Positions 42,031 to 56,460 of a stretch of DNA of 64,000 nt are shown here, piece after piece. The position numbers and the translations under genes are program-made. This DNA is from Marsupella aquatica (lineage: Eukaryota; Plantae; Marchantiophyta): the NCBI GenBank assembly GCA_973895155.1, contig OZ316898.1, positions 11,245,187-11,309,186 of the forward strand, in the 5' to 3' direction. The notes beneath the pieces are model-generated. The model saw only the letters and a program-made list of their open reading frames with translations. It was not told the DNA's origin and searched no databases. The first letter of the stretch is position 1. Each line of letters opens with the position of its first letter.

Positions 42031-42300
42031 TCAGGACGCTGGGGCTGCTCGTACTGCTGGTGCAGGTGCCACTGGAAACCCCGACGCGCGTTCCAGCTCC
42101 TCTTTCAGCTGCTGGGAGAAATCGTCATTGACATCGTCATCATCCCAGTCATCTTCCCATTGTTGCAGGGCGAGCTTCTCTCCTTCTGCATCATCCCACT
42201 CCTCATTCTCGAACTCCTCAAATTCATCGTCATCCTCAAACAGATCGAGTCGAGCGTCCTCTGTAGCGTCCGTTGAGGCTGTATCCGTGGGATTGGCCAT
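42031..42300 (-). CDS. DSS1: SEM1/DSS1 26S proteasome / BRCA2 / TREX-2 small acidic subunit (89 aa)
   Basis: MANPTD...[18 protein letters not shown]...[25 protein letters not shown] likely 5'-UTR intron has its acceptor near 42320 and donor near 43094. Confidence 0.93.
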
Positions 42301-43209
42301 TTCCGAACCCGTCCTTAAGCTGCGATACCAACAAGAGTTGAGAAAAGGCTCAAAGAGGTATATACAGGAAAAATGAGACAGAAGACAGCGGGGGCCAAGC
42401 AATTGCATCCGACATAGAAAGCACTCAACCTGCCTGAACCCTAATTCTTTTTTCCTCTCTCGGTACGACCTTGGCAATTCAAGCCACACAATCCGTCTCT
42501 ACGTCAATAGATATGACGACCAACCCCCGAGACCGATGAATGGAAAAAGAAGCTCCCTGTGCCTGCTGCGAATGACAGGAAAAGGATCGGATCTGCCACA
42601 ATATTATGATGTATACCAAACGACAGTTTCGCCTAGGTTTCGACAATAAGTTCTTTGCCTTTATGCGTTAAATGCAATCGAAACAATGAGTGAGGATCAA
42701 GAAGTCAAGCTCAGCAAACCAGCGAATCGAAGTACTAACGGTCAAATTTGAATGACATATTCTTAAAACCCGGAAGATTTCAATTTCTTTGTTCAAGCTC
42801 AGCTCGACTGACAAGACACATAGCATAATTCGTTTATCATCCCAGCTGAGTAGATTCACACAAACACAACACCAAAACCGGCTCAACCTGATCGCAGCAG
42901 CAGTGCCTAAACATTGACCCTCCTAATTGCAGCAATCGTCGTGATGGAACATTGAAGGCAGAAGACGTGCCACAACTCAGCAGTGAGACCCCAACCTAAT
43001 CCCATCACTATTTAACAACAAACATTGAAGGCAAGGCAGAAGAAGAAAGTGAAGAAGACCCACAATGTAACAGAACGGCTGAAACGGTGGCACACCTGTG
43101 AAGCGGCCCGTGAGAAAAAAGCTCCCGAGGATTCGATCTTCAGGCAGAGCGTTTCAGCGTGAAGAAACAGAGGATTGTGATTCTAAAGAGGATGCCAATA
43201 AGCTCCACC

Positions 43210-43430: not shown

Positions 43431-45709
43431 CATAGCAGTCTAGTAATTGCTCTCAAAATGTGACAATATAGGGTGTAATATGTCACTCCATGGACCATAC
43501 CATGATAACTCTAATTATCCTGCGTAAATTCTTGAGTGTTATAACAAAATGTGACAATATGAGAATGTCCATTCTCTGAATATTAATAGAGATTATGACA
43601 CATCATGCATGATTATCATTTTATCATACATAACATCCAATTTTTCCATCCACATGGATTCTGGTGGGGCCCTACAGTCAGGGTCTAGAGGCTTCACTCT
43701 AAACCTAGACCCCAACTCTAGCTTCCCATATATAGCAATTTATTAGTAAGAAAGAGTGTAATATGCACTCCATAGTCCATACCCTGATAAGTAGTTATTC
43801 TATAAACATCCTTGAGTGTTATTCATAGTACATTGTAGATTGTCACATTTTGATATGCAATTACCAGGACACCAGCCAGACTGCTGGAGCTTTGCTTCAC
43901 TGTCTCCTATTCCACCCCAACTATACCTGCGCCACTAGGGTCAAGGTCGCCAAGGTCCCGAGGCTTCACCCTAAACCACAAGCCCTTATCCTAACTGTTG
44001 ATCAGGCTTTATAAGATAAATTTGGGATTGGGAGCTTGGATGGATAGAAACCAGGTAAGTCAGTTTATTGTTGAGTGGGGCCTTAGTTACTTTGCCGTCA
44101 TGGGTGACTCTCAAGCGCTTTTACTCTTTGGTCTTTGTGGGGTTTTCTCCTCGGTTTTCTCCCCTTTACTGGATGTCGTACCCTTAGGGTTCTTGCCCTC
44201 CCTGAGTGGCGCTTTTTGTTCTTTGGTAGAGTGATGTGTAACGGATGGGGATGGACGGAAGTTTGATGTGTGCCATATGACATGCCAAATCTCGATGGAC
44301 ACAACTGAAATGTTTAAATCTACTTGCATAATATGTTTTACACTTGTGTTCCAAAGATGACACGTAAACATACATTTGATCGGTAGTAGGTTTTTAATAG
44401 ATTCCTCGAGTCTTCTGTCCATGCAATGGCCTCTCTTCTCATTAACAAAGGATTTGGGTTCCCTTTCTTACTTCAGTTAGGGTGTGTGCAACCAAATATT
44501 TACACTTTAATATCATGACAGTAAAAGGTTTCATGACATACCTACATTGTATAGTTCTTGTGTCCATATGAATAGCAATGTCAAACTTCAGTCTGAGCTT
44601 CCACTGCCAACATTTTTTGTTGTTTTCAATGTAAGTACACTGGAAAATGCAATTTTTCCTGAATGCTTGAACCTAAACAACAAATATATAATTTCTGACT
44701 GTAGATATTAAGTGTATACATGCATAATGTACACTATGGGCATTTATTGATAAGTGCAACCGACTAGTGCACATAGTAGTTTCATGATTGTACTTATCCA
44801 GTTAAATTGTGTAGTATGAGGACCACAGCTATGAGAAGTCCAATATATGTGTGCGGCTGACAGCACATATGGGAAGTGCATATTATATTCCTCTGCACTT
44901 ATAGTGTAATAAAATAAGTACTTTGCAAGAGCCTTTCTTCTTGGGAAGATGCATTTTGACACTGTAGACTGTAGGAATAGACTGCTTTCCTGCTGGTTTT
45001 TTCTAGTGATGTCTTTGAAAAACAAAACCAAAAAAATCCCAACCTCACTGATTAACCCCACAACAACATCACTAAAGAGAATCCCCGATGATGGAGAAAA
45101 TCCCACCGAAACAATGTTTAAATGTGGTTCACAGTATGAGCCATAGTGTCTGCATCTGCAGTATGTCAAGGTCCAAGCTCCACAGTATATGTGGCAATCT
45201 TCATTCACTTCATTCCAGAGTTTGCACTTGGAAAGAGTGGACTCTTATTTCTTATACATTTCTGTACATTTGTCTAGGTAACCTTAGATGCTATGAGAGC
45301 ATCTTCCTGCAATGCTAGTTAAAGTGAACCTGGATAACTTCTCTAGAGACCTCTTGTAACCTGCAATGGAGGACAAAGCCCAAACACCCAAGAATTGGAA
45401 TTGTTGAAATGTCCTAAATGGCTCTGCCCTTGTATGACAACATAAGGGTAGGCTTTTTTGCTGCCCTCATTATTGTGTGGCCCTCACCCTTCCTAACTTG
45501 TGCTTGCAGACAGGAGGTGGGTGTCAGTGAAGGAACACACATCTAATTCAAATGACTGCATCTCACCAACACTGAGGCAGACTAAAGGTGCATCTGAGAA
45601 ACTCTAACTTAACTGAGCCTGGGTTAACAAACATTTTTATGATGAATAAAAATCAAGGCTACAAGATGTGCTTTCCATCAAGCCAAACATCTCCTATTTT
45701 TGTTAAGGA

Positions 45710-46065
45710 TCAATTGCATGTACAAATTTTCAAAGTCAGCTATCTTTTTGTGAATGTTTACCCATTTTTTGTAATCAGCAATGATCAACCTTTGATTTCT
45801 CCCTAGTACTGGATGATAGTTGTCGATCCTGGTACCATTAGAAGCTCCTTGAGATGTCCTTTCCAGCCCAATGAGCCAAACATCGTCCATTTGGGTTGAG
45901 ATCATTGCATGTACAAATTTATGAAGTCAACTGTCTTTTCTTGAATGTTTGCACATTTTCTGCAATCAGCGATATTGACCTGTGATGTCTCTATGAATAT
46001 TGGATGATAAATTTCAATCCTGATAACACTAGAAGCACTTTGAGATGTGCTCTCCAATGAGCCTA
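45710..46065. repeat. Diverged tandem duplication (~190 bp x 2)
   Basis: ATTGCATGTACAAATTT..AAGTCA..TGAATGTTT..ATCAGC..TGGATGATA..TAGAAGC..TGAGATGT is repeated at ~45712 and ~45904. Confidence 0.75.
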
Positions 46066-46899
46066 GCACCCCCAGTTTTCATAGAGTATCTCAACATATA
46101 TAAAATAATGCCAAAGTTAGCTTTCTTTCTTTGAATGTCTTTTCTAACTTAGTCCTCTTTAATTGCCAATGTTGAAGACCTAGAACTTGACTAACGAACG
46201 AGCTAACGAATAGCTCAAGCAGGTCACCCCATTGCCTCTTATTTTGGCATTGTCAAGAAATGAGGAAAAGACATCTACAACAGGTTGTTACTAAGCAAAA
46301 TCTACAGAGTCATCAAGTGGATGGTACTCAAAGCAAAAACCTAGGGTGGAGAGAGAACTTAGCATTACTTTTCAAGCTATGAATCAAAGAATTCCCTCAA
46401 GTTTATTGTCCTAAGCAGACAATGCAAACCTAAGAAAGGCATCCAATTGGTGGAAGAATTGTTCTGTGATTATGCTTAGATGTACCAAGAAGGACTGTAG
46501 CTTGAATCCATTCAACATTGCCACAATGGAGTACGTAGAAGGGTTCAGTTGACAGTTGGCCATGGTCGTAAGAAAACTGCATGGGCTGGTTGGATATATC
46601 CTCTTATTTGTGAAGGGTTTACCAGCTTGCCAAAGTTGTTGGTTTAAAGTTTTTCCCTTTAACTCTAAGAATGATTGCTACAAATATTTTGAGATATATA
46701 GTCCATGAGACATTCTCAAGGGACCACAAATATGTCACCTGGTGAACAATAATAAGAATTTTGATGAACTGATGATGCCATGCTGATACAGACTTTCCAA
46801 GATCACAACAACATTGTCATTTGGTCTCAAGCAAGGAAGTTGATGTGTTCTCCAGCCAAGTAGAAATATATTGAATGAGTAACAGCACATCACATAATG

Positions 46900-47450
46900 G
46901 GTGTTCTACATAGAGGCATTGATTATGGAGAACTGAATGATGATATCACTGAGAACATGGATGAGACTCATTTTGTCATAAATACGGACAATGGAAAAAC
47001 CTTAGGCTTTTGAGGTGATAGCAATGTGAAGTATTCTGATGTGGTATCTGGTGGTGAAGGGATGACAATGTATGTGAAGGTTTTGGGTGGTGTGAATGCC
47101 AAAATTCAACCCCTGTTTATGATTTTCAATAATTCATTGTCTTCATATGATTCCATTGGCTATGTGTTTGACAATGTGCATGGATCAAGTTTCTTACAAG
47201 AGTACCCCATCTTCTTTCATGACCAGTGCTTGTTTGAAAGAGTATACATTGAAAGGGGAGCAAGCACACCTGATATTCAAAGGAGAGTCAAGATTCCATC
47301 AAGGAATAATTGCAAAGGGCACAACCAGACACCAACTTCCATTGCAGCTTTGCAAGAAATTATGATAGATATCAGGTATCTACCAGCAAATCCAACTCTC
47401 CTTTGCCAACCCACTGATTCATTTATGATTTCAAAGATACGATGTCTCGA
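46900..47450 (+). pseudogene. Second, unrelated and older pogo/Fot1-like DDE_1 transposase remnant
   Basis: ENMDETHFVIN..GKTLGF*GDSNVKYSDVVSGGEGMT..IQPLFMIF...RYLPANPTLLCQPTDSFMI, with stops and heavy decay. No TIRs found. Confidence 0.7.
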
Positions 47451-48294
47451 AAAAGAGGTGGAAACACCGGGGGTGGGGTGATATGTTCACGAAAGTGACA
47501 TATCACGTGCGACAAACTATAGGGCCATTTAATGGTTTTAATGGAAGACTTATTAAGTTGTCATTGGAAATATAGTAAGGGTCATTTAATTTCAAAATGC
47601 ATATGTGTCATCAATGTCTCCCTCCAACCTATACTCTCAAGGGAGGACCAAGATCTGTGGGCCTAAGTAAAGTATATATTATCCTAATCTAATCAAGAGT
47701 TAACTAACCCCAGTGAAGCCAAACTAACTATAGTTGGGACTCAAGTCAATTCCTAGCATTTTGACATTGGCAAGGGACTATGTAACTAAGTTGAACAGTA
47801 CAGTCTGTTTACAAACATGACATGTCTTATGCATGAAAATCAATGATAACGTTCAATCTGTCTCTCAACAATGTATGGTTTGAAAATCAACTTGCCCTAG
47901 AGCTTTAGAATATATAACATACAAAGTATCGAGTGAATTTTGAAGGGAGTTGAGTTGGGCTTAACATTGGTGCTACTGTTGAAGTGGCTCGTGATGTTGG
48001 TGAACTAGGTGGAGAACTAGCTCAACCCACTTCTCTTTGAATTGTATGTCGTTATGAGACATAGGGGACACGTGTAAGGAAACTAAACAAAAGGCTACCG
48101 TCTTCCCCCGAACACAGCGCCCGGGCGCTGTGTTTGAAAGTTTTGATTTTTGGGTCCTGGTGTTAAAAAGTTACTTTTCTTCGAACACAACGTCACTTTT
48201 ACACAACGCCCGGGCGCTGTGTTCGAACTTGGCTTTGTGTTCGGGGATGTCGTTGTGTTCGGGGGACCGTTCTTGCATGTTCCTTTACAATCAA

Positions 48295-48660
48295 AGTGTT
48301 CATAGTGGACACCGGCGTCAAAGCCCGGATGCGGCAGCTTCGACTCCGTTGCGAGTAGGGAGCCGATCTGTTGCGAGTAGGGAGCCAATCTGTTGCATCA
48401 ATCTGTTGTGAGTAGGGAGCCGTGAATGCGAATACGAGGTCGTTGGACCGGATGGTGTAGCTGCAGTACGTCTGATTGCCGGTCGTCTGATCCAATTTTG
48501 CCATGAGGTTCATGCCCAGCCCCCATGAGAACCGTCGCCAGGTGTTGGACGTGTCGCCGCACCAGAACTCCACATGATGGAATTTCTCGACCGCAAACCG
48601 GTCGCTCAGCGGATTCTTCCTTACGAAATTCTTGAATCCTACCAAATTCAAACCACCGCC
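48295..48660 (-). pseudogene. HPPD: Captured N-terminal fragment of 4-hydroxyphenylpyruvate dioxygenase inside the pogo element
   Basis: NLVGFKNFVRKNPLSDRFAVEKFHHVEFWCGDTSNTWRRFSWGLGM...DQTTGNQTYCSYTIRSNDLVFAFTAPYS...PHPGFD. It is truncated by the left subterminal region and disrupted by 22-bp duplications. Confidence 0.9.
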
Positions 48661-48759
48661 CAAAGAATTCGGGATCGCAATCATACACAGTATGGATCCA
48701 GAGGTTGACAGTGGCTTTGAACTCATCCGGCACAAGAATTAAATGGCATTTATACCTGA

Positions 48760-50226
48760 CAGAAACCAAAATCTCGGATTGGACATGAAGCGATTCAGTC
48801 AAAATGCCTTGCGTTGAACCCGTCTGCACCCTGGCGGCATTCATTTCTGATTCCAAATCCTCAAGAACGTATTGAAGGTCCCTGTGCATCTCCAGTTGTG
48901 CGAGAAGCTCATTCTACACATGAAGAAGAGAAGAATATAATGGTGAATTCTGTATTAATCTTAGAATGTTGTTGTCATCCGTGTCGAGCTTAACATCTGT
49001 GTCGAGCTTAACTGACAATTTTGCAACCAGGATACTTCTCACACATGTCTTTGCAAATATCAATTGCACTTCTTTCGCGAAAGGATGCAATGCCGCACAG
49101 TAATTCAAATTTTTGGATACACGAACCCCGGTCCAAGAACGATGATGAGTTACCCTACCTTTAGATTTAGATTCTCTATCTGAACCTTGCTTAAATATCG
49201 CTTGATCTTTGCTCAATTCTTCATTTAGTTCTCTTGTGACCTCCTCAATCTGTGAACAGTGTCAACAAAGAATGATTCCGGAACTTTAAGTCAAAATCAA
49301 ACCAATGACGGTCTTCCATTTTTCCAACGAACCGAGGGATTGTCATCAGAAACAAAAATGTCTCGACAGTTAGGGCACTGTGGAAGCAAATAGAAGCTCT
49401 CGACAACTCTCACACCTTTTCTAGAATGTTGCCAACAACAATATGGCCCAGACATACTCCATTAAATTAAATGGCACTTTGGAACTTTATATAGTTGTGC
49501 AAATCAATACATCCAGGCGCAATTGCACTGCGGCACAAATCAAACTATGATCCTCAATCGTAACTCTTACTGTAACTTATCTCCTGCAAAGCGATTCACC
49601 AAATTTGTGATAGCCTTGCCTTTTGGCAATAGAACATTGATTCTCCTGGCTTTCTTGGCTGGCTGTGGTGATGGAGAGAACTTTGTGAAGCTATCCAAAA
49701 GATACAAATCAAAATCTTCTGTGGGTACCGGCTTCCTCACAGAGAGACATGCACTGACCCAATCAAAGCTGACGAACTTCACTCTCCCACTAGTAAAACT
49801 CCACAGTCCCCCATTCATACTTTGCCAAAATCGTCTGCCAATTCTTGGCAATCACATGAGTCGTCATTGAACTAAATCGGTAACAAATTGAACCTCCACA
49901 CTGGACAAATCGTCGCTTCAATAAATCAAATTGGCCTGGGCTGAATTCATCAGGAATCAGTAGTGCATACATGCCCTCGAATGTGTCTCGAGTCTTGGCA
50001 AGTGCACGAGCCAGTGCATCCATCTCAGCTTTGACGTCTGTCTCTATGTTTGGCTCCAGCTTAGTGCAATTTGCCGCCATCTCAGCATTTGCCTCCATTT
50101 GAGTGGTCGCCTCAATTGCAATCTCCTGAATGGACTCAATGTCTGCAACCAATGACTCTATGGCTGCCGCAGACTCCACCTCTGCCAACACATCAATCTC
50201 TGCATTTGAAGTCTTCTCTGCCATCG
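48760..50226 (-). pseudogene. Captured fragment(s) of a BRCT-domain / coiled-coil gene inside the pogo element
   Basis: FEGMYALLIPDEF..LKRRFVQCGGSI..FSSMTTHVIA, then a frameshift near 49820, then VKFVSFDWVSACLSVRKPVPTEDFDL. This is a BRCT pattern similar to the N-terminal BRCT of plant X-family polymerase lambda. Acidic/coiled-coil exon-like pieces lie at ~49985-50226, ~49249-49150 and ~48913-48760. Confidence 0.6.
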
Positions 50227-51048
50227 CTACCAGCAAGCAAGAAAGCCTTACAAAAGATGAGAAATGAACAATGAGGTGCCTTGCACAGTTGCCCCCGCCA
50301 CTTTGAGAAGGGGCGTTGTGATCGATTTATGCTACAAATTAGGAAATTGCTCCAAAAGAGACAAAGTATGAAAACAGACAAAATGTCCCACCATTCTCGC
50401 TCCATCACAAAATCGAGTTGGTGCCTTGAGCAAACATTGGGAACTTGGGAGGCTTTGGCTATGGACAGAAGGCAAACCAAAGAGCTGCAACAGGAGGGGT
50501 AAGTGAAGAAACTTAAGTCAAATAGAAACAGACTGTCAATCGTTAGCTCACTCATGTTAAGGTTACTTGATTGAGACTAATGCCTCCGTGAATTGCTTTG
50601 TTGCAGCAAGGATCAAAGGCCTTGAGGTCCTTGTCGTTGGCTCCTCACGCGTTTGACTTCCTCCTTCCTGGCTCAGAACATCAACTAAGAGTGCAGGACG
50701 AAAATGGGTCAGTGCACGACAACTCATTCTTGTGTAAAGTTTCAATTCTATTGAATCATACTCATTGACTGTCGACCCTGCCACTTTTTACATTCATTTC
50801 TCTTCATGGTCGACAGCCAACAATCGATAGTCGATAGTATATGACCAACTCCAGCGATCACAGGAGAAAATCAGTTGGGGTAACTTTCCTACATGGATGG
50901 AAAAAGTTGAGCGCTCTAGACCTTAAGTATCCACAAGAAGTCAGCCAGGTCGGTTAGGTGACAGACGTTAAAACCTCCATTAAATCATGGATACCATCCA
51001 TAGGAGAATCAAAAGGAATGAGCGATTTGGAAAGGGCAAGGGAGATAC

Positions 51049-51187
51049 CGTAAACAATCTTCTTATCAGACGCAGGATCTCGGCCTCTCTCAAAAAATTC
51101 TGCGAGTCCGCCACTCATAGGCCGAACTGTTGTACGAGTGTGCGCTGAGGCCACCACAGGTTGCAGCAAGGTCCTAAAAGCCTGCAT
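51049..51187 (-). pseudogene. Captured first coding exon of mitochondrial ribosomal protein uL29m/L47 inside the pogo element
   Basis: A presequence-like MQAFRTLLQPVVASAHTRTTVRPMS is followed by GGLAEFFERGRDPASDKKIVYG, resembling the LEEFF...VVYG start of MRP-L47. A phase-1 GT donor follows (51047-48). No downstream RxW..SELRLKS exon is visible. A probable 5'-UTR intron lies at ~51219-51411. Confidence 0.72.
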
Positions 51188-51751
51188 TGTGTCCTTAACT
51201 CCCGTTTGATCTATCTCCTGTCAAGCAATGGCAAGCTAACACATTCTCTAGCAGGGCTCTCCCTAACAGAATTGTTGTCCGTCCGGCAACAGGAGAAATT
51301 GCAACGGAGACGGTAGGAAATCGGGCGAGGTAAAAGACCCTAATTTTGTGAAGTTGCTTGTTTGACCATTGAAATCAGGAGTCCCGATTGCTATAGAGAG
51401 GTTCAAGTGACCTGCAGGAGCCAAATTGGTGTAGACATTATAGTACCGTCAAATTCAATATCACTGCACTGAAGTGTTTGTAAAAGCTCAGATGTCTGTG
51501 GTGAACTTTGACAAAGTGCTTAAACCACAATTGCCACGATAAAGGCCCCTGGCTCTTCTTCTATGGTCGCAACCAGGGTCGACCATTCCCATCTTTCATT
51601 TCATGCCTTTGTTGATTTCTTCGTTGTAGGAAGCCAGGGTTAAAAGTGTTATGTGAAGGAGGTTGCTACCCCTGGCATTGACAGACCGTATTTCATTGAC
51701 AGACCGTATTCATTGACAGACCATATTTTCCTTTGCAGGAATTAGAGAGCT

Positions 51752-53743
51752 ATGGCAAGACATCCTCGTGAGACAGCTAATGAGAAGCGACGGACTTACT
51801 CTCTTAAGTTCAAGCTGGACGTGATTTGGGAATACAACCCCAACATCAAAGGGCAAGGCTTTGTGGCACTCAGCAAAAAATTTGGAGTGCCCCGGTCTGC
51901 TTTGAGAGGGTGGTATGAGAAGAGGGCAGAGTTGCAAGCCTCTCTTAAGGACGATAAGATCTTAACCCGGAAATCACGCCGGTTAAGGGGAGGTGGACGG
52001 AGACCATTGCTGCCCGGAATGGAGGAGGAGCTCCACACTTGGATCCTGGCACGAAATGAGAAGGGATTGAGGGTGAAGGACATGTACATTGCCAAGATGG
52101 CCTTGAAGATTGCAGAGAGGATGGCTGCCAGCACAACAAATGAGGAGCTTGCGACATTTAAAGCGTCAACAGGTTGGTTGGATAGGTTCAAGAAGCGACA
52201 CAACCTGGTGTCAATGAGACACACAACAGATCACAAGCTACCAGAGAATGTTGTTGATTTGTCATTCAAGAGTGCCAAGAATTGATTGACACTAACAAAA
52301 TTAAGCCCAAAAACACTATCAACATGTATCAGGTTCCGAGGTACTATGAGACTGAGCCAAAGTCAACTATTGCTACTAGAGGCATTCGGACGGTGATGAT
52401 GAGAAAGGTGGTACCAGCCATAAACGATTCACCATAGCTTTTTCCATCACAGGAGAAGGCAAGCATTTGAAACCACACATCCTCATCTCAAAGAGGAAGA
52501 ATAAACCTGAAGTCCCGTTGGGCGTGTTTGTCGATGTGAACCAGACAGGTATTTTTTTCAATATCTATTATCTTGCAAACTAAGCTTCTCTTTTGTAATT
52601 TTCATGACTTTTTTAGGGTTGCCAGTAAACAAACTCTATTCTAATTATTGACCGTGGGTTTTATACTATGCAGGTATGTGGAATGAACATATATGTTGGG
52701 AACACTTCAATGAAACAGTGATGAAGCGAGGTGAGACCCAATTCTACCGGGAGCCCACTCTATACATCATTGACGCATATGGTCCCCACTTGAAGTGGCC
52801 CAAGGCACATGCAAAGGTACTGGAGGACTACAATGTGTTTGTGCGGATTGTGCTAGCGAATTTGACCTCCCTCTTGCAGCCTCTTGATGTTGCAGTGAAC
52901 CGGAGCTATCAGGCAGATTATGCAACACAATATGACACTTACATTGCAGATGCCTTAATTGATCCAAATTTGCAGACAACTGCAGAAAACCCTAAAGTTT
53001 CGGCTGCCAAGATGGTGGCAGAATGGGCACTTTCATGGATTGGAAATTGTGAAAAACAGGACGTGGCAAATGCATTTAGGGTAAGGTGGAGAAGTTTTGA
53101 CATTATTTGTATGTACAAACATTTTATGTGACTGGAAACATTTGGCAAATATTTTCTAGTGAATCCTAATTAAGTTGATGCTTCTTGTGTTGTCAGGTTT
53201 GTGGCTTGGTGCCCAACTCACAATTTGCAGTGGAAAACCTACATCTGCCACTAAGAGCTTTGTATGCAGCAGAACTTGGACTTGGCTGAATGGAATGAAC
53301 TGTATGGGCATGTACTTCACGAGAGTGAAGAATTGCGTCCCACTCTTGTCATCGAGCCGCCTACATGGTTTTGTCCTGAAGAGGATTACTCTTTGTTCAA
53401 ATGTCTTCTTCGTTGCAAGGGTATACACGGAAGTGATGTGGACGAATACCTTGACACCTATGTCATGAAGCTGGTGGTGCACATGTCAATGTGTCCTGAT
53501 CTAGATGACATTTTTGATGATGACGCTGCAGCTGACATGGTAAGTGGAGAAATGGTGGCAGGTACCTTGGCAGTGTTTGCAGCTTCAAACTTGGAGGAGT
53601 GGGAGATTGAGCTCACGGAAGTGAACCTTGACAACAAGATCATCCAAAATTTTGTGTACAAGGTGGAGGATCCTGTCAAGCGAGTTCATTTAGCACGAAC
53701 AGGGAATTACTTTTGTGCTCAGCTGAATGAAGGATTGATGTAG
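51752..53743 (+). pseudogene. pogo-like transposase (HTH + CENP-B/Tc5 HTH + DDE_1 + C-terminal extra domain), 2 introns, frameshifted
   Basis: Motifs RRTYSLKFKLDVI, EEELHTWI...FKASTGWLDRFKKRHNL, INMYQVPRY (first Asp of NMDQ apparently mutated to Tyr), KRFTIAFSITGEG and LYIIDAYGPH...LTSLLQPLDVAVN (37 residues between D2 and D3). Introns 52549-52673 and 53081-53196; frameshifts near 52260, 52390 and 53270. Confidence 0.88.
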
Positions 53744-56212
53744 GGCATGCACATCATCCTTGTTGGGTGACAACCTTCTTGGGCATGTGTTCCTTGTGTC
53801 ACTATGAGAGTTATGAGATCGATATTGGACTGGTTCTTCAATGAGAGTAAAACTTTGTAACTCTCATAGGTACACAAGGTGAACTTGTCCAAGCATTTTG
53901 ACTTCATTTTGTGTGTTCATGATGCTTCTATACAAAAATGTTTCTCTTTTGAGGCAATTGAACACTTGTGTTTATGTTTTAAATTATGTTGTTCACAATA
54001 GTGACCTTTTGGGACTACAAATATGTCATAATTAAATATGTTTTACATAATTATATGTTTACCAAGTGATAATGTTGATTTGGTAAATTTTTTGCATGGT
54101 TTGTAAGGTCTTATTTTGTGCTACAAATAAATTTGTTCTAGACTACCCATGACTTGTTGCATTTCAGTGTTTAAAGTAGCTACATTTTCCCAATTTAACA
54201 CTTATCTCTAACACATTGGTTGTATCCTATAATTCCAGCTTATACCCCAAATTCATATAATGCCTAAATTCAAACACAACGCCACAATTCGAACACAACG
54301 CCACAATTCGAACACAACGCCACACGCTAAAAAATCATAACTAGAGTCTCAAAACTCGAACACAACGCCCTGGGCTCACTATTCGAATATAGCGCCCCTT
54401 GGCCCACTATTCGAATATAGCGCCCGGGCGCTGTGTTCGGGGGAAGACGGTAGTTTGTAGTTTATGTGAGACAACATGTGTTATTCATAGTTTGATAGAA
54501 GTGAATCTAAAAGATCTTGTAGTACACCAAATTGCAACTTTCTTACTTAATCGACCAAAAGATGCATATTTTTGCCCATTGGACCTTTGGGCCACCAAAG
54601 ATACCATTTCATGTTAGATGTTCTTCTAATGCAATGTGCACTCCTTACAACTTGAGAATGTCATTGTAAAATGCAACATTGTATACATTGACAACAACGC
54701 ATACACGGACTGTGATGTCAAATAAACCATTTGCCATGAGATTGCAACATGACACAAAGCATCATTGTTAACACTTGTAACACTGACAACAATGTCTACA
54801 TAGAACACTATGTCAAATGAACCAAGCATTGTGCAATCACAACACAATATGGAGCACTGCAGTTAGATTTGTACGTGTATGGACATCAATGTATACAAAA
54901 AGTATTATACATAGTTAGAGAACTTATGGTTTAGGGTAAACTGGAGCTTAGGCACGTAAAATCAGAATTGATATATGTATATCTTGAGCCGAATATAGTA
55001 TTGACAATGATTTGGTGTACGACCCACCAGATCATTGACATGACATAGAACTTTTGCACGTTTCGGTCATTTAACACAATGTTTTTTTGATGCACATGCT
55101 TTGCAATGTCAACTCGCACCTCAAGGTTGTGAGTGGTTCCACTCCCCTAAAGTGTTAGTACAGTTTTTCTAGAGGGAGCATGTTAGGCATGGAGGACAAT
55201 GAGTTGATGCATTTATGGACAATGCGACAATGCAATTTGTATACACTGAGACAATGTCTTCATAAGCAAGCTACGAGGTTGGGGGAGCTAAGGTGCTTGC
55301 AAGCTCCAGTGCGGTTGTCAACTATTTCCACTGTATCTTGAATACTACAGCCAAAATGTATTCTAGAAAGCTGCAAGGCGGGTGCTCAAAGGTGCAGGCG
55401 TGCTGTGATGCCACTACAAGCTCCTTTATTTATATTTTGAATAAAATAGCCATATTGTATTCAACCAGACTAGGAAGCCCCATGCTTCATTGGTGTCAAG
55501 GTCAGGGTACGGGCATTTGCGTGATCCATGCACTGCATAATTATCGTAGAGGTTATTACATAGGCCCAACCATGGGATCCTATGGCTACTCAGTGAGCCT
55601 CATCTCTGTGATGAACCTTTCACAAGAACATTGTTGTACAGAGTACTAGGCCCAGAGGTTCACTCGGAGTGAATCTGAAAGTTAGCTCCACCTGATAAGT
55701 TAGCTCCACCTGATAACAATATGCAATTTTTGGTAGGTTAAATGAGAAGGTTAGATTTGGAGGTCCTTAAGTAGATCTCTCTTTGAAACCCACATTGTTA
55801 GTGTTCATTGAGAATGAAAACAACTACTTTATTGTGCACAGGCAAAGGTTATTACCTACACGAGGTTGCCAATTAGGAAAGAAAAAACTTATCCCGTTGT
55901 TCACTTTGGAGAGACAATGAGTTATACCCCCCATTAGTGATCATTACTCTTGCCAATCCAAGGCGTAATCATAAATATTATACTTTCTTTATGAAGCACC
56001 AAACTAATACATGTGTGGCACGTTTGACCCCCGTGCAGGTCCCGGTAAAAGGGGAAAGAATCCATGACTGCTAAAAACACTGCAGCCATTGTTCACTCCA
56101 ATGCTCTCATTACTTGATTACCAATTACTACAGGTTGCATTAAAGAAAGAAAGAAGAGTAATGACATGTGGACAAAACAACTAACTCCTCCCTCACAGAA
56201 ACTAACAACTAC

Positions 56213-56460
56213 AGTACTTTTACACACGCACAAATTCCATCCAAATTCCTTCCTTCATGAAGAGTCCGAATTCCGAAACTCCCGATTCCAACCTACAGTC
56301 CAAGTGTCCAAGCGAATTCTGAAATAATATAATACAAGTACTTTTACACACGCACAAATTCCATCCAAATTCCTTCCTTCATGAAGAGTCCGAATTCCGA
56401 AACTCCCGATTCCAACCTACAGTCCAAGTGTCCAAGCGAATTCTGAAATAATATAATACA
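56213..56460. repeat. Perfect tandem duplication, 124 bp x 2, upstream of NDR kinase
   Basis: Units start at 56213 and 56337 (AGTACTTTTACACACGCACAAATTCC...AATATAATACA). Confidence 0.92.

Follow-up and report, generated by a model that had tools for sequence, protein, structure and literature searches.

A broken pogo transposon with a BRCT gene and an HPPD gene fragment in Marsupella aquatica

A pogo-type DNA transposon and the genes it carries were analysed in the genome of Marsupella aquatica. The DNA under study, called the window here, is a 64,000-nucleotide (64-kb) stretch of contig OZ316898.1 in assembly GCA_973895155.1 (positions 11,245,187 to 11,309,186), and all coordinates below are positions within the window unless stated otherwise. 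The element at 48098-54450 is probably a dead, non-autonomous copy of an abundant, TA-targeting pogo family. Its backbone would be made of 32-bp terminal inverted repeats (TIRs), subterminal 13-nt repeats, a pogo transposase gene on the + strand and, on the - strand, a small BRCT gene belonging to the transposon lineage. This backbone would have received two low-copy inserts. The first, of 1.1 kb, comes from an HPPD locus and covers ~120 codons from the start of the gene together with DNA upstream of them. The second, of ~0.6 kb, may contain exon 1 and some of intron 1 of the gene for the mitochondrial ribosomal protein uL29m.

The pogo element, its ends and its family

The ends of the element were defined by the 32-nt sequence CCGTCTTCCCCCGAACACAGCGCCCGGGCGCT, which has exactly two matches in the window. 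The two are inverted, at 48098-48129 (+) and 54419-54450 (-), and the chance expectation is 0, as none was found in 100 shuffles with up to 3 mismatches allowed. The TIRs, a feature of the pogo superfamily, are perfect here, identical at 32 of 32 bp. TA is found on both flanks of the element and beside the adjoining termini of two related elements, on contigs L001 and L002, in agreement with the 2-bp target site duplication (TSD) of pogo elements, and for many other insertions the contigs cease to match 1-3 nt beyond the TIR. Inside the TIRs, a 13-nt motif, CGAACACAACGCC, occurs 11 times in the 64-kb window with at most 1 mismatch, compared with 0.05 expected, and five of these lie near each end. 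The motifs of the right end are arranged as 19-bp and 28-bp tandem repeats. The left subterminal region (48098-48268) is 75.6% identical to the end of the L001 element and is the deepest bin in all four sequencing runs described below. The subterminal CGAACACAACGCC repeats are probable binding sites, predicted from the sequence, for the CENP-B/Tc5-type helix-turn-helix (HTH) domains of the transposase.

Each of the two broken genes, for the transposase and for BRCT, was searched in separate pieces. The open reading frame (ORF) at 51752-52285 (+) matches HTH_Tnp_Tc5 (Pfam, 6.9e-16), which is the CENP-B/Tc5-type HTH of pogo transposases, and residues 12-64 of this N-terminal ORF also give weak matches to BrkDBD (Brinker) and CENP-B_N. 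The ORF at 52676-53131 (+) matches DDE_1 at 5e-4 and 20.1 bits, slightly below the Pfam cut-off of 22 bits; the ORF of a relative carries PF03184 (DDE_1). Its TSD, TIR and HTH, with a DDE_1 match that is weak, place the element in the pogo superfamily of the IS630-Tc1-mariner group. Downstream, the ORF at 53264-53743 probably represents either the transposase C-terminus, as a conserved part, or a separate ORF.

Relatives at 62% and 49% identity were found when the N-terminal transposase ORF was used in a word-index search, and two of their contigs were read. L002, with the 62% identical transposase, has the same terminus as the window element, TA followed by CCGTCTTCCCCCGAACACAGCGCC, and its left TIR lies 1.6 kb upstream of the transposase start. 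L003 has a continuous second ORF and was used as the reference for lesions. Three insertions or deletions (indels) were located in the window gene. A 10-bp deletion lies at 52261, where other copies read TGTCGGGCAT, which encodes the CRA of L003. One G is deleted at 52406, a base that is present in other copies, and 4 bp are inserted at 53129 relative to L003 and to other copies. The first catalytic Asp motif reads NMYQ in the window (52327) and NMDQ in L003, a D>Y change. With at least three indels and this change, the window transposase is truly broken, and the copy is unable to make transposase.

Introns of the transposase gene were also compared. An intron at ~52551-52672 is likely common to the window copy and L003. 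L003 has a further intron after WLDR (1203-1395 of that contig), which is lacking in the window lineage (52189-52246); this difference is an intron gain or loss within one transposon family.

The abundance of the family was examined in four public runs (X1, X2, X3 and X5), which cover two organisms and three studies. Logan contigs were placed on 47900-53899 at a likeness of at least 80%. Between 246 and 923 contigs were placed per run, with identities ranging from above 99% to below 90%. Beyond 48094-48095, contigs enter unrelated sequence (34 in X1, 20 in X2, 55 in X3 and 22 in X5), and agreement with the consensus is only 0.37-0.48. This indicates that the contigs come from many insertions, at various sites but with TIR and TA in common, and that 48098 is the true terminus. 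The number of distinct contigs per position was 5-10 per run over the BRCT gene, ~11 over the transposase and 1-2 over the HPPD and uL29m inserts. The family is abundant in a bryophyte-type plant genome. An exact TIR scan of metagenome contigs gave no match, and that collection evidently does not include the samples of L002 and L003 (JGI metagenomes).

Loose contig ends were also seen at 48129, 48138 and 48142. They belong to the right ends of other copies and to derivatives that share just the terminal 32-45 bp. The contigs with the TIR only, which diverge into a few recurrent sequences, suggest derivatives of the family that resemble MITEs (miniature transposable elements with inverted repeats). 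Between the BRCT gene and the transposase, 137 bp (51404-51542) are skipped by two contigs each in X1, X2 and X3; this spacer is a mosaic of indels among family copies.

These data agree with the initial annotation in several points. It had described a pogo element bounded by TIRs and TA with a decayed transposase, as found here. It had expected further copies sharing the TIR, and in the contigs of the four runs dozens of distinct left flanks were seen. It had also proposed recent movement in trans, which is plausible for an abundant family with near-identical contigs. Copies without the frameshifts of the window copy exist, which makes a transposase source in trans plausible. Any move after the breakage would have used transposase from intact relatives, which would recognise the still-perfect ends.

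The BRCT gene

The BRCT gene is a complete single-exon ORF that runs from 50226 to a stop at 49567 on the - strand. The encoded protein has a single BRCT domain between an acidic N-terminal region and a basic tail. In the window the ORF is broken by a 1-nt frameshift after ...EWGTVEFY (~49793). When 1.84 billion cluster representatives were scanned in full with HMMER, only four relatives were recovered. P0001, at 67% identity, is encoded on L001, a 1.7-kb contig from another sample. On L001 the BRCT gene stands ~100 bp from a left end that is a diverged version of the one in the window and closes with GGGGGAAGACGG followed by TA. The window and L001 BRCT genes are 70% identical in DNA and have the stop codon in common. 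An extension of the BRCT gene to 48760, as the initial annotation had drawn it (~50226-48760), is ruled out by the L001 similarity and the shared stop at 49567: the gene ends there, and 49377-48269, which includes 49377-48690, is HPPD-locus insert.

The selection on the BRCT gene was evaluated by comparing the two copies by codon. For 175 codons of the window and L001, the ratio of nonsynonymous to synonymous substitution rates (dN/dS) is 0.33 (Fisher p 8e-8); for the 96 codons within the BRCT domain it is 0.18 (p 4e-9). The two copies also carry independent disabling lesions, the frameshift in the window and a W>stop change in L001. The purifying selection indicates that, for most of the time over which the two pogo copies diverged, the BRCT gene was functional.

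The BRCT identity was verified at the protein level. The first BRCT piece alone matches PTCB-BRCT at 0.011, and Pfam BRCT matches were obtained for the relatives P0004 (3.5e-15) and P0003 (2.9e-6). The family profile matches the BRCT domains of BRCA1, MCPH1, Rtt107 and BARD1 (5e-8 to 1e-4), and also those of REV1 and TdT. The BRCT fold, as predicted from these matches, is a sound assignment. The relatives other than P0001 are orphan BRCT proteins, and two were examined in their genomic context: P0003 lies on contig L005 directly upstream of a Transposase_21 (CACTA) gene, and P0002 is on the same contig as a PHD_NSD protein.

Taken together, the gene looks like an accessory gene of the pogo lineage and not a recently captured host fragment. 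The BRCT protein would probably have served the transposon, for example, and speculatively, by docking to host break-repair factors.

The two low-copy inserts and their origin

The HPPD fragment was verified by comparison with known HPPD proteins. The ORF at 48735-48199 (-) matches residues 21-128 of Arabidopsis HPPD at 3e-35, and P0011, a bryophyte-type HPPD N-terminus, is 78% identical to the fragment, so the HPPD piece that had been annotated on the - strand holds. The homology begins at a Met at ~48684, is broken by a 22-bp tandem duplication and resumes in a different frame (SKLPHPGFDAG) to ~48300. About 120 of the ~440 HPPD codons are present.

Most family copies do not have this segment. 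Contig joints at 48268>49378, 48215>49425 and 48311>49347 skip the HPPD region and carry ~25 other letters instead. Similarly, L001 passes from the BRCT gene to the left subterminal region within ~100 bp, without the HPPD segment. The joints and L001 together indicate that ~1.1 kb (48269-49377) is an insert specific to the window copy or to a small subfamily. At 48552, within the insert, 1-2 distinct variant contigs were found; in X5 the variant letter alone is present at this position, and the coverage across 48300-49300 is at single-copy level. Two contigs, X1 record 2 (6956 bp) and X5 record 25 (771 bp), match 49031/48928-49349 at ~88-94% and are then unlike the window. From these placements, the contigs that run past 49349 are parent-like: they fit a parental HPPD locus whose upstream region continues beyond the captured boundary. 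The junction between the insert and the BRCT gene is crossed by contigs with zero differences, 49031-49407 in X1 and 49138-49407 in X3. The HPPD piece is confirmed as a transduplicated fragment of a host gene and is probably a non-functional passenger. HPPD is an essential gene and a herbicide target. In principle, small RNAs directed at the parent gene might arise from the captured upstream and 5' coding DNA.

The second insert contains an ORF that starts at 51187 (-) and has 46 codons up to a GT donor at 51049 (G/GTATCT). Within it, LAEFFERGRDPASDKKIVYG aligns with LEEFFEFDRSQDEDKPVVYG of Arabidopsis uL29m (At1g07830) at the collinear N-terminal position. Support for uL29m was also looked for in Pfam (E up to 10), in the word-index protein search, in the ESM Atlas, by exact-product look-up and in the metagenome scan, and none was obtained; exon 2 was looked for and was not found. 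The edge of the insert at 51253 is crossed by an exact contig (X2 record 11, 51044-51285) and by an 87%-identical X1 contig. On balance, the stretch at 51049-51187 is slightly favoured to derive from uL29m. Like the HPPD piece, it would be a non-functional passenger.

Both inserts resemble 5' ends of genes that would have been copied in genomic form into a part of the element, between its left end and its transposase, that is not essential. They would most likely have originated as filler DNA, synthesised by template switching during the repair of a double-strand break or an excision gap in the element. The replacement of ~25 nt of the other copies by the 1.1-kb HPPD piece fits this type of synthesis.

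The proposal of the initial annotation was that pieces of uL29m, a BRCT/coiled-coil gene and HPPD, host genes unrelated to one another, were taken up by a pogo of autonomous type, which thus acted as a multi-gene exon shuffler. This is unlikely. In its favour, HPPD is a true host fragment, the uL29m-like exon lies within a second low-copy insert, and the absence of BRCT from L002 shows an acquisition at some stage. The BRCT gene, however, is a whole ORF with a conserved stop that has been under purifying selection (dN/dS 0.33) between pogo copies differing by 30%; most family copies contain it, and like the transposase it is multi-copy. Among the 1.84 billion representatives, none of those matched was a conserved host BRCT protein, and the matches are transposon-linked or orphan. 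Of the three proposed host genes, HPPD is thus retained and BRCT is reassigned to the transposon lineage, and uL29m is not statistically established (best E 0.07). Similarly, of the separate parental loci that had been expected, a parent-like HPPD locus was found in the X1 and X5 contigs, but no conserved host relative of BRCT was found among the representatives.

A composite origin is far less probable still. In such a case two separate pogo ends or MITEs would flank ordinary DNA with decayed host genes, and the cargo would never have been mobilised as a unit. Many derivatives do share just the first 32-45 bp of the TIR (48129, 48138, 48142), solo ends are common, and the left flank is itself repetitive. 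The order of left end, BRCT gene, transposase and right end is nevertheless the backbone of the family, as seen from L001, with BRCT ~100 bp from the end, and from L002, with the TIR 1.6 kb upstream. In addition, TA is present on both sides, and other copies have ~25 nt exactly at the HPPD insert site. An assembly artefact, in which mis-assembly of repeats joined the HPPD and uL29m pieces to the transposon, is hardly credible: repeats of such a highly repeated element invite chimeric joins, and one of the junction-spanning samples may be the source of the assembly, yet zero-difference contigs from three studies cross 49347-49378 (X1, X3) and 51253 (X2), which speaks against the mis-assembly considered with the initial annotation.

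Several points weigh against the reading of the element as a dead pogo copy with a lineage BRCT gene and two inserts. L002 has a 62% identical transposase and the same TIR but no BRCT gene, which indicates that BRCT was gained within the pogo family, and the gene could conceivably be an old capture from a host gene. Logan depth is not copy number and serves as a rough guide only, so that the term low copy stands mainly on distinct-contig counts and joints. The plant uL29m chains in the PDB match only at E 0.07 and 0.35 with 77 aa and at 0.86 with 46 aa, which is not significant, and the left edge of the second insert (~50650) is approximate. The parental HPPD and uL29m loci are known from contig placements only. 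The repair mechanism is an inference, and junction microhomology needs the parental sequence for comparison.

The features of the element are collected in Table 1. In its surroundings, the left flank (47900-48099) is itself highly repeated in all four runs, and an ORF at 47026-47481 has a LPANPTLLCQPTD-like stretch that recalls a DDE transposase, with no Pfam match. The pogo copy probably sits in older repetitive DNA. The flank of L001 (1142-1317 of that contig) is 72% identical over ~180 bp to 44465-44294 of the window, which lies 3.6 kb to the left of the element. For this likeness, insertion at an orthologous site in a sister species was considered and is unlikely, because the window TIRs are identical while the elements differ by 25-30%, and also because no bounded insertion fills 44466-48097; the likeness is probably a short shared repeat. 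An ordinary host gene for the proteasome subunit DSS1/SEM1 lies near the element at 42031-42489 (-) (Pfam, 1.1e-17). Outside the element, 56213-56460 is a perfect 124-bp tandem duplication with two copies that are 100% identical.

Table 1. Features of the pogo element in the window and the observations on which they are placed
Feature	Position	Strand	Basis
Left TA TSD	48096-48097		TA on both flanks; dozens of contigs with unlike flanks cease matching at 48094-48095
Left TIR, 32 bp, perfect	48098-48129	+	2 matches in the window, 0 expected
Left subterminal region, 5 CGAACACAACGCC-type motifs, probable transposase-binding sites	48098-48268		Motif count; likeness to L001
Low-copy insert from HPPD locus (upstream DNA and 5' coding part)	48269-49377	-	Joints skipping it; missing in most family copies and L001
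HPPD coding fragment, start Met to ~residue 120, frame broken	48300-48684	-	Matches to Arabidopsis HPPD and P0011
22-bp tandem duplication, 2.2 copies, within HPPD fragment	48348-48396		Joint 48348>48401 (8 letters between), a duplication-free version in X1 and X3
Transposon-borne BRCT gene	49567-50226	-	Stop shared with L001; dN/dS; 5-10 distinct contigs per run
Second low-copy insert with uL29m-like exon	50650-51253	-	Loose ends at 51253 in 4 of 4 runs; low depth at 50700-51100
Possible exon 1 of mitochondrial uL29m/L47, ATG to GT donor	51049-51187	-	Weak PDB matches; donor
18-bp tandem repeat, 3 copies, directly upstream of transposase ATG	51676-51728		Repeat search
Pogo transposase (CENP-B/Tc5-type HTH and DDE_1), broken	51752-53131	+	Pfam; relatives; indels at 52261, 52406 and 53129 versus other copies
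C-terminal ORF of transposase region, 159 aa, no Pfam match	53264-53743	+	164-aa ORF at the same place in a relative's contig
Tandem repeats of the right subterminal region (3.1 copies of 19 bp, 2.1 copies of 28 bp), with CGAACACAACGCC	54260-54418		Loose ends of other copies at 48129 reproduce right-end sequence
Right TIR	54419-54450	-	32-nt match
Right TA TSD	54451-54452		Sequence

Comparison with known transposon systems

Gene-fragment capture is well documented for MULE, CACTA, hAT, PIF and Helitron elements and for rice mariner-like elements. The remark in the initial annotation that capture is much less often described for Tc1/mariner elements is fair, though for rice there is a published account of Pack-Mariner elements (PMC8903248). 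Pack-TYPE elements are by definition non-autonomous, without transposase, and elements that match transposases are classed as autonomous-derived in the published pipeline (Gisby and Catoni 2022, PMC8903248). The window element shares with Pack-TYPE and Pack-MULE elements the form of a TIR-bounded cut-and-paste element with a duplicated host fragment, the 5' part of HPPD, between its ends. Unlike them, it keeps a complete but broken transposase gene (51752-53743), and unlike the rice Pack-Mariner it is a pogo and not a Stowaway or mariner-like element. It is not a strict Pack-TYPE element and is best described as an autonomous-derived, dead pogo with a BRCT accessory gene specific to the lineage, one proven passenger and one possible passenger.

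Pogo elements of land plants were surveyed by Gao et al. (2020, PMC7386202), who reported them only as Lemi (Lemi1), in 23 eudicot species and with no notable amplification; pogo elements in that survey are 1.2-5.2 kb long, with one or two transposase ORFs. The window element shares with pogo and Lemi the TA duplication, the short TIRs and a CENP-B/Tc5-type HTH, which is followed here by a weak match to DDE_1. Unlike the elements of the Lemi survey, it belongs to a bryophyte-type host, is abundant, is 6.35 kb long and has a BRCT gene that is not a transposase. The known plant range of pogo is thereby widened beyond the eudicots of the 2020 survey (PMC7386202). As a capture event, it adds one more example, a clear pogo case in a bryophyte-type genome, which is real and fairly ordinary.

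Host coding sequence is also carried in transposase-encoding elements by the ULP1-protease-bearing MULEs and CACTAs. Similarly, Turmoil-1 of C. elegans (PMC2572040) has host coding sequence inside a transposase-encoding element. The window element differs from Turmoil-1 in superfamily and host, and its HPPD piece, short, broken in frame and taken from the 5' part, gives no sign of having been kept by selection.

The more useful result is that the BRCT gene appears to belong to the transposon lineage and to be under selection there, with relatives among the BRCT genes of CACTA elements, and not to be captured junk. The pogo and CACTA cases both have small BRCT proteins inside a DNA transposon beside the transposase, with an identity of only 25-35%. 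In contrast to the CACTA cases, the pogo BRCT gene is on the strand opposite to the transposase, encodes one BRCT domain instead of two, with no PHD or F-box partner, and accompanies a transposase of a different superfamily. It is possible, though on balance doubtful, that a small BRCT adaptor gene was passed between unrelated DNA-transposon superfamilies of bryophytes, or recruited by them independently, and was kept under selection in each. If so, cut-and-paste transposons of the bryophyte lineage would carry their own module for engaging the host double-strand-break repair or chromatin machinery, and this repair-linked biology might also account for the uptake of host DNA by the window pogo copy. 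The comparison of pogo with CACTA leads to a testable idea, namely that several cut-and-paste superfamilies in the host plant bring their own DNA-repair-type adaptor.

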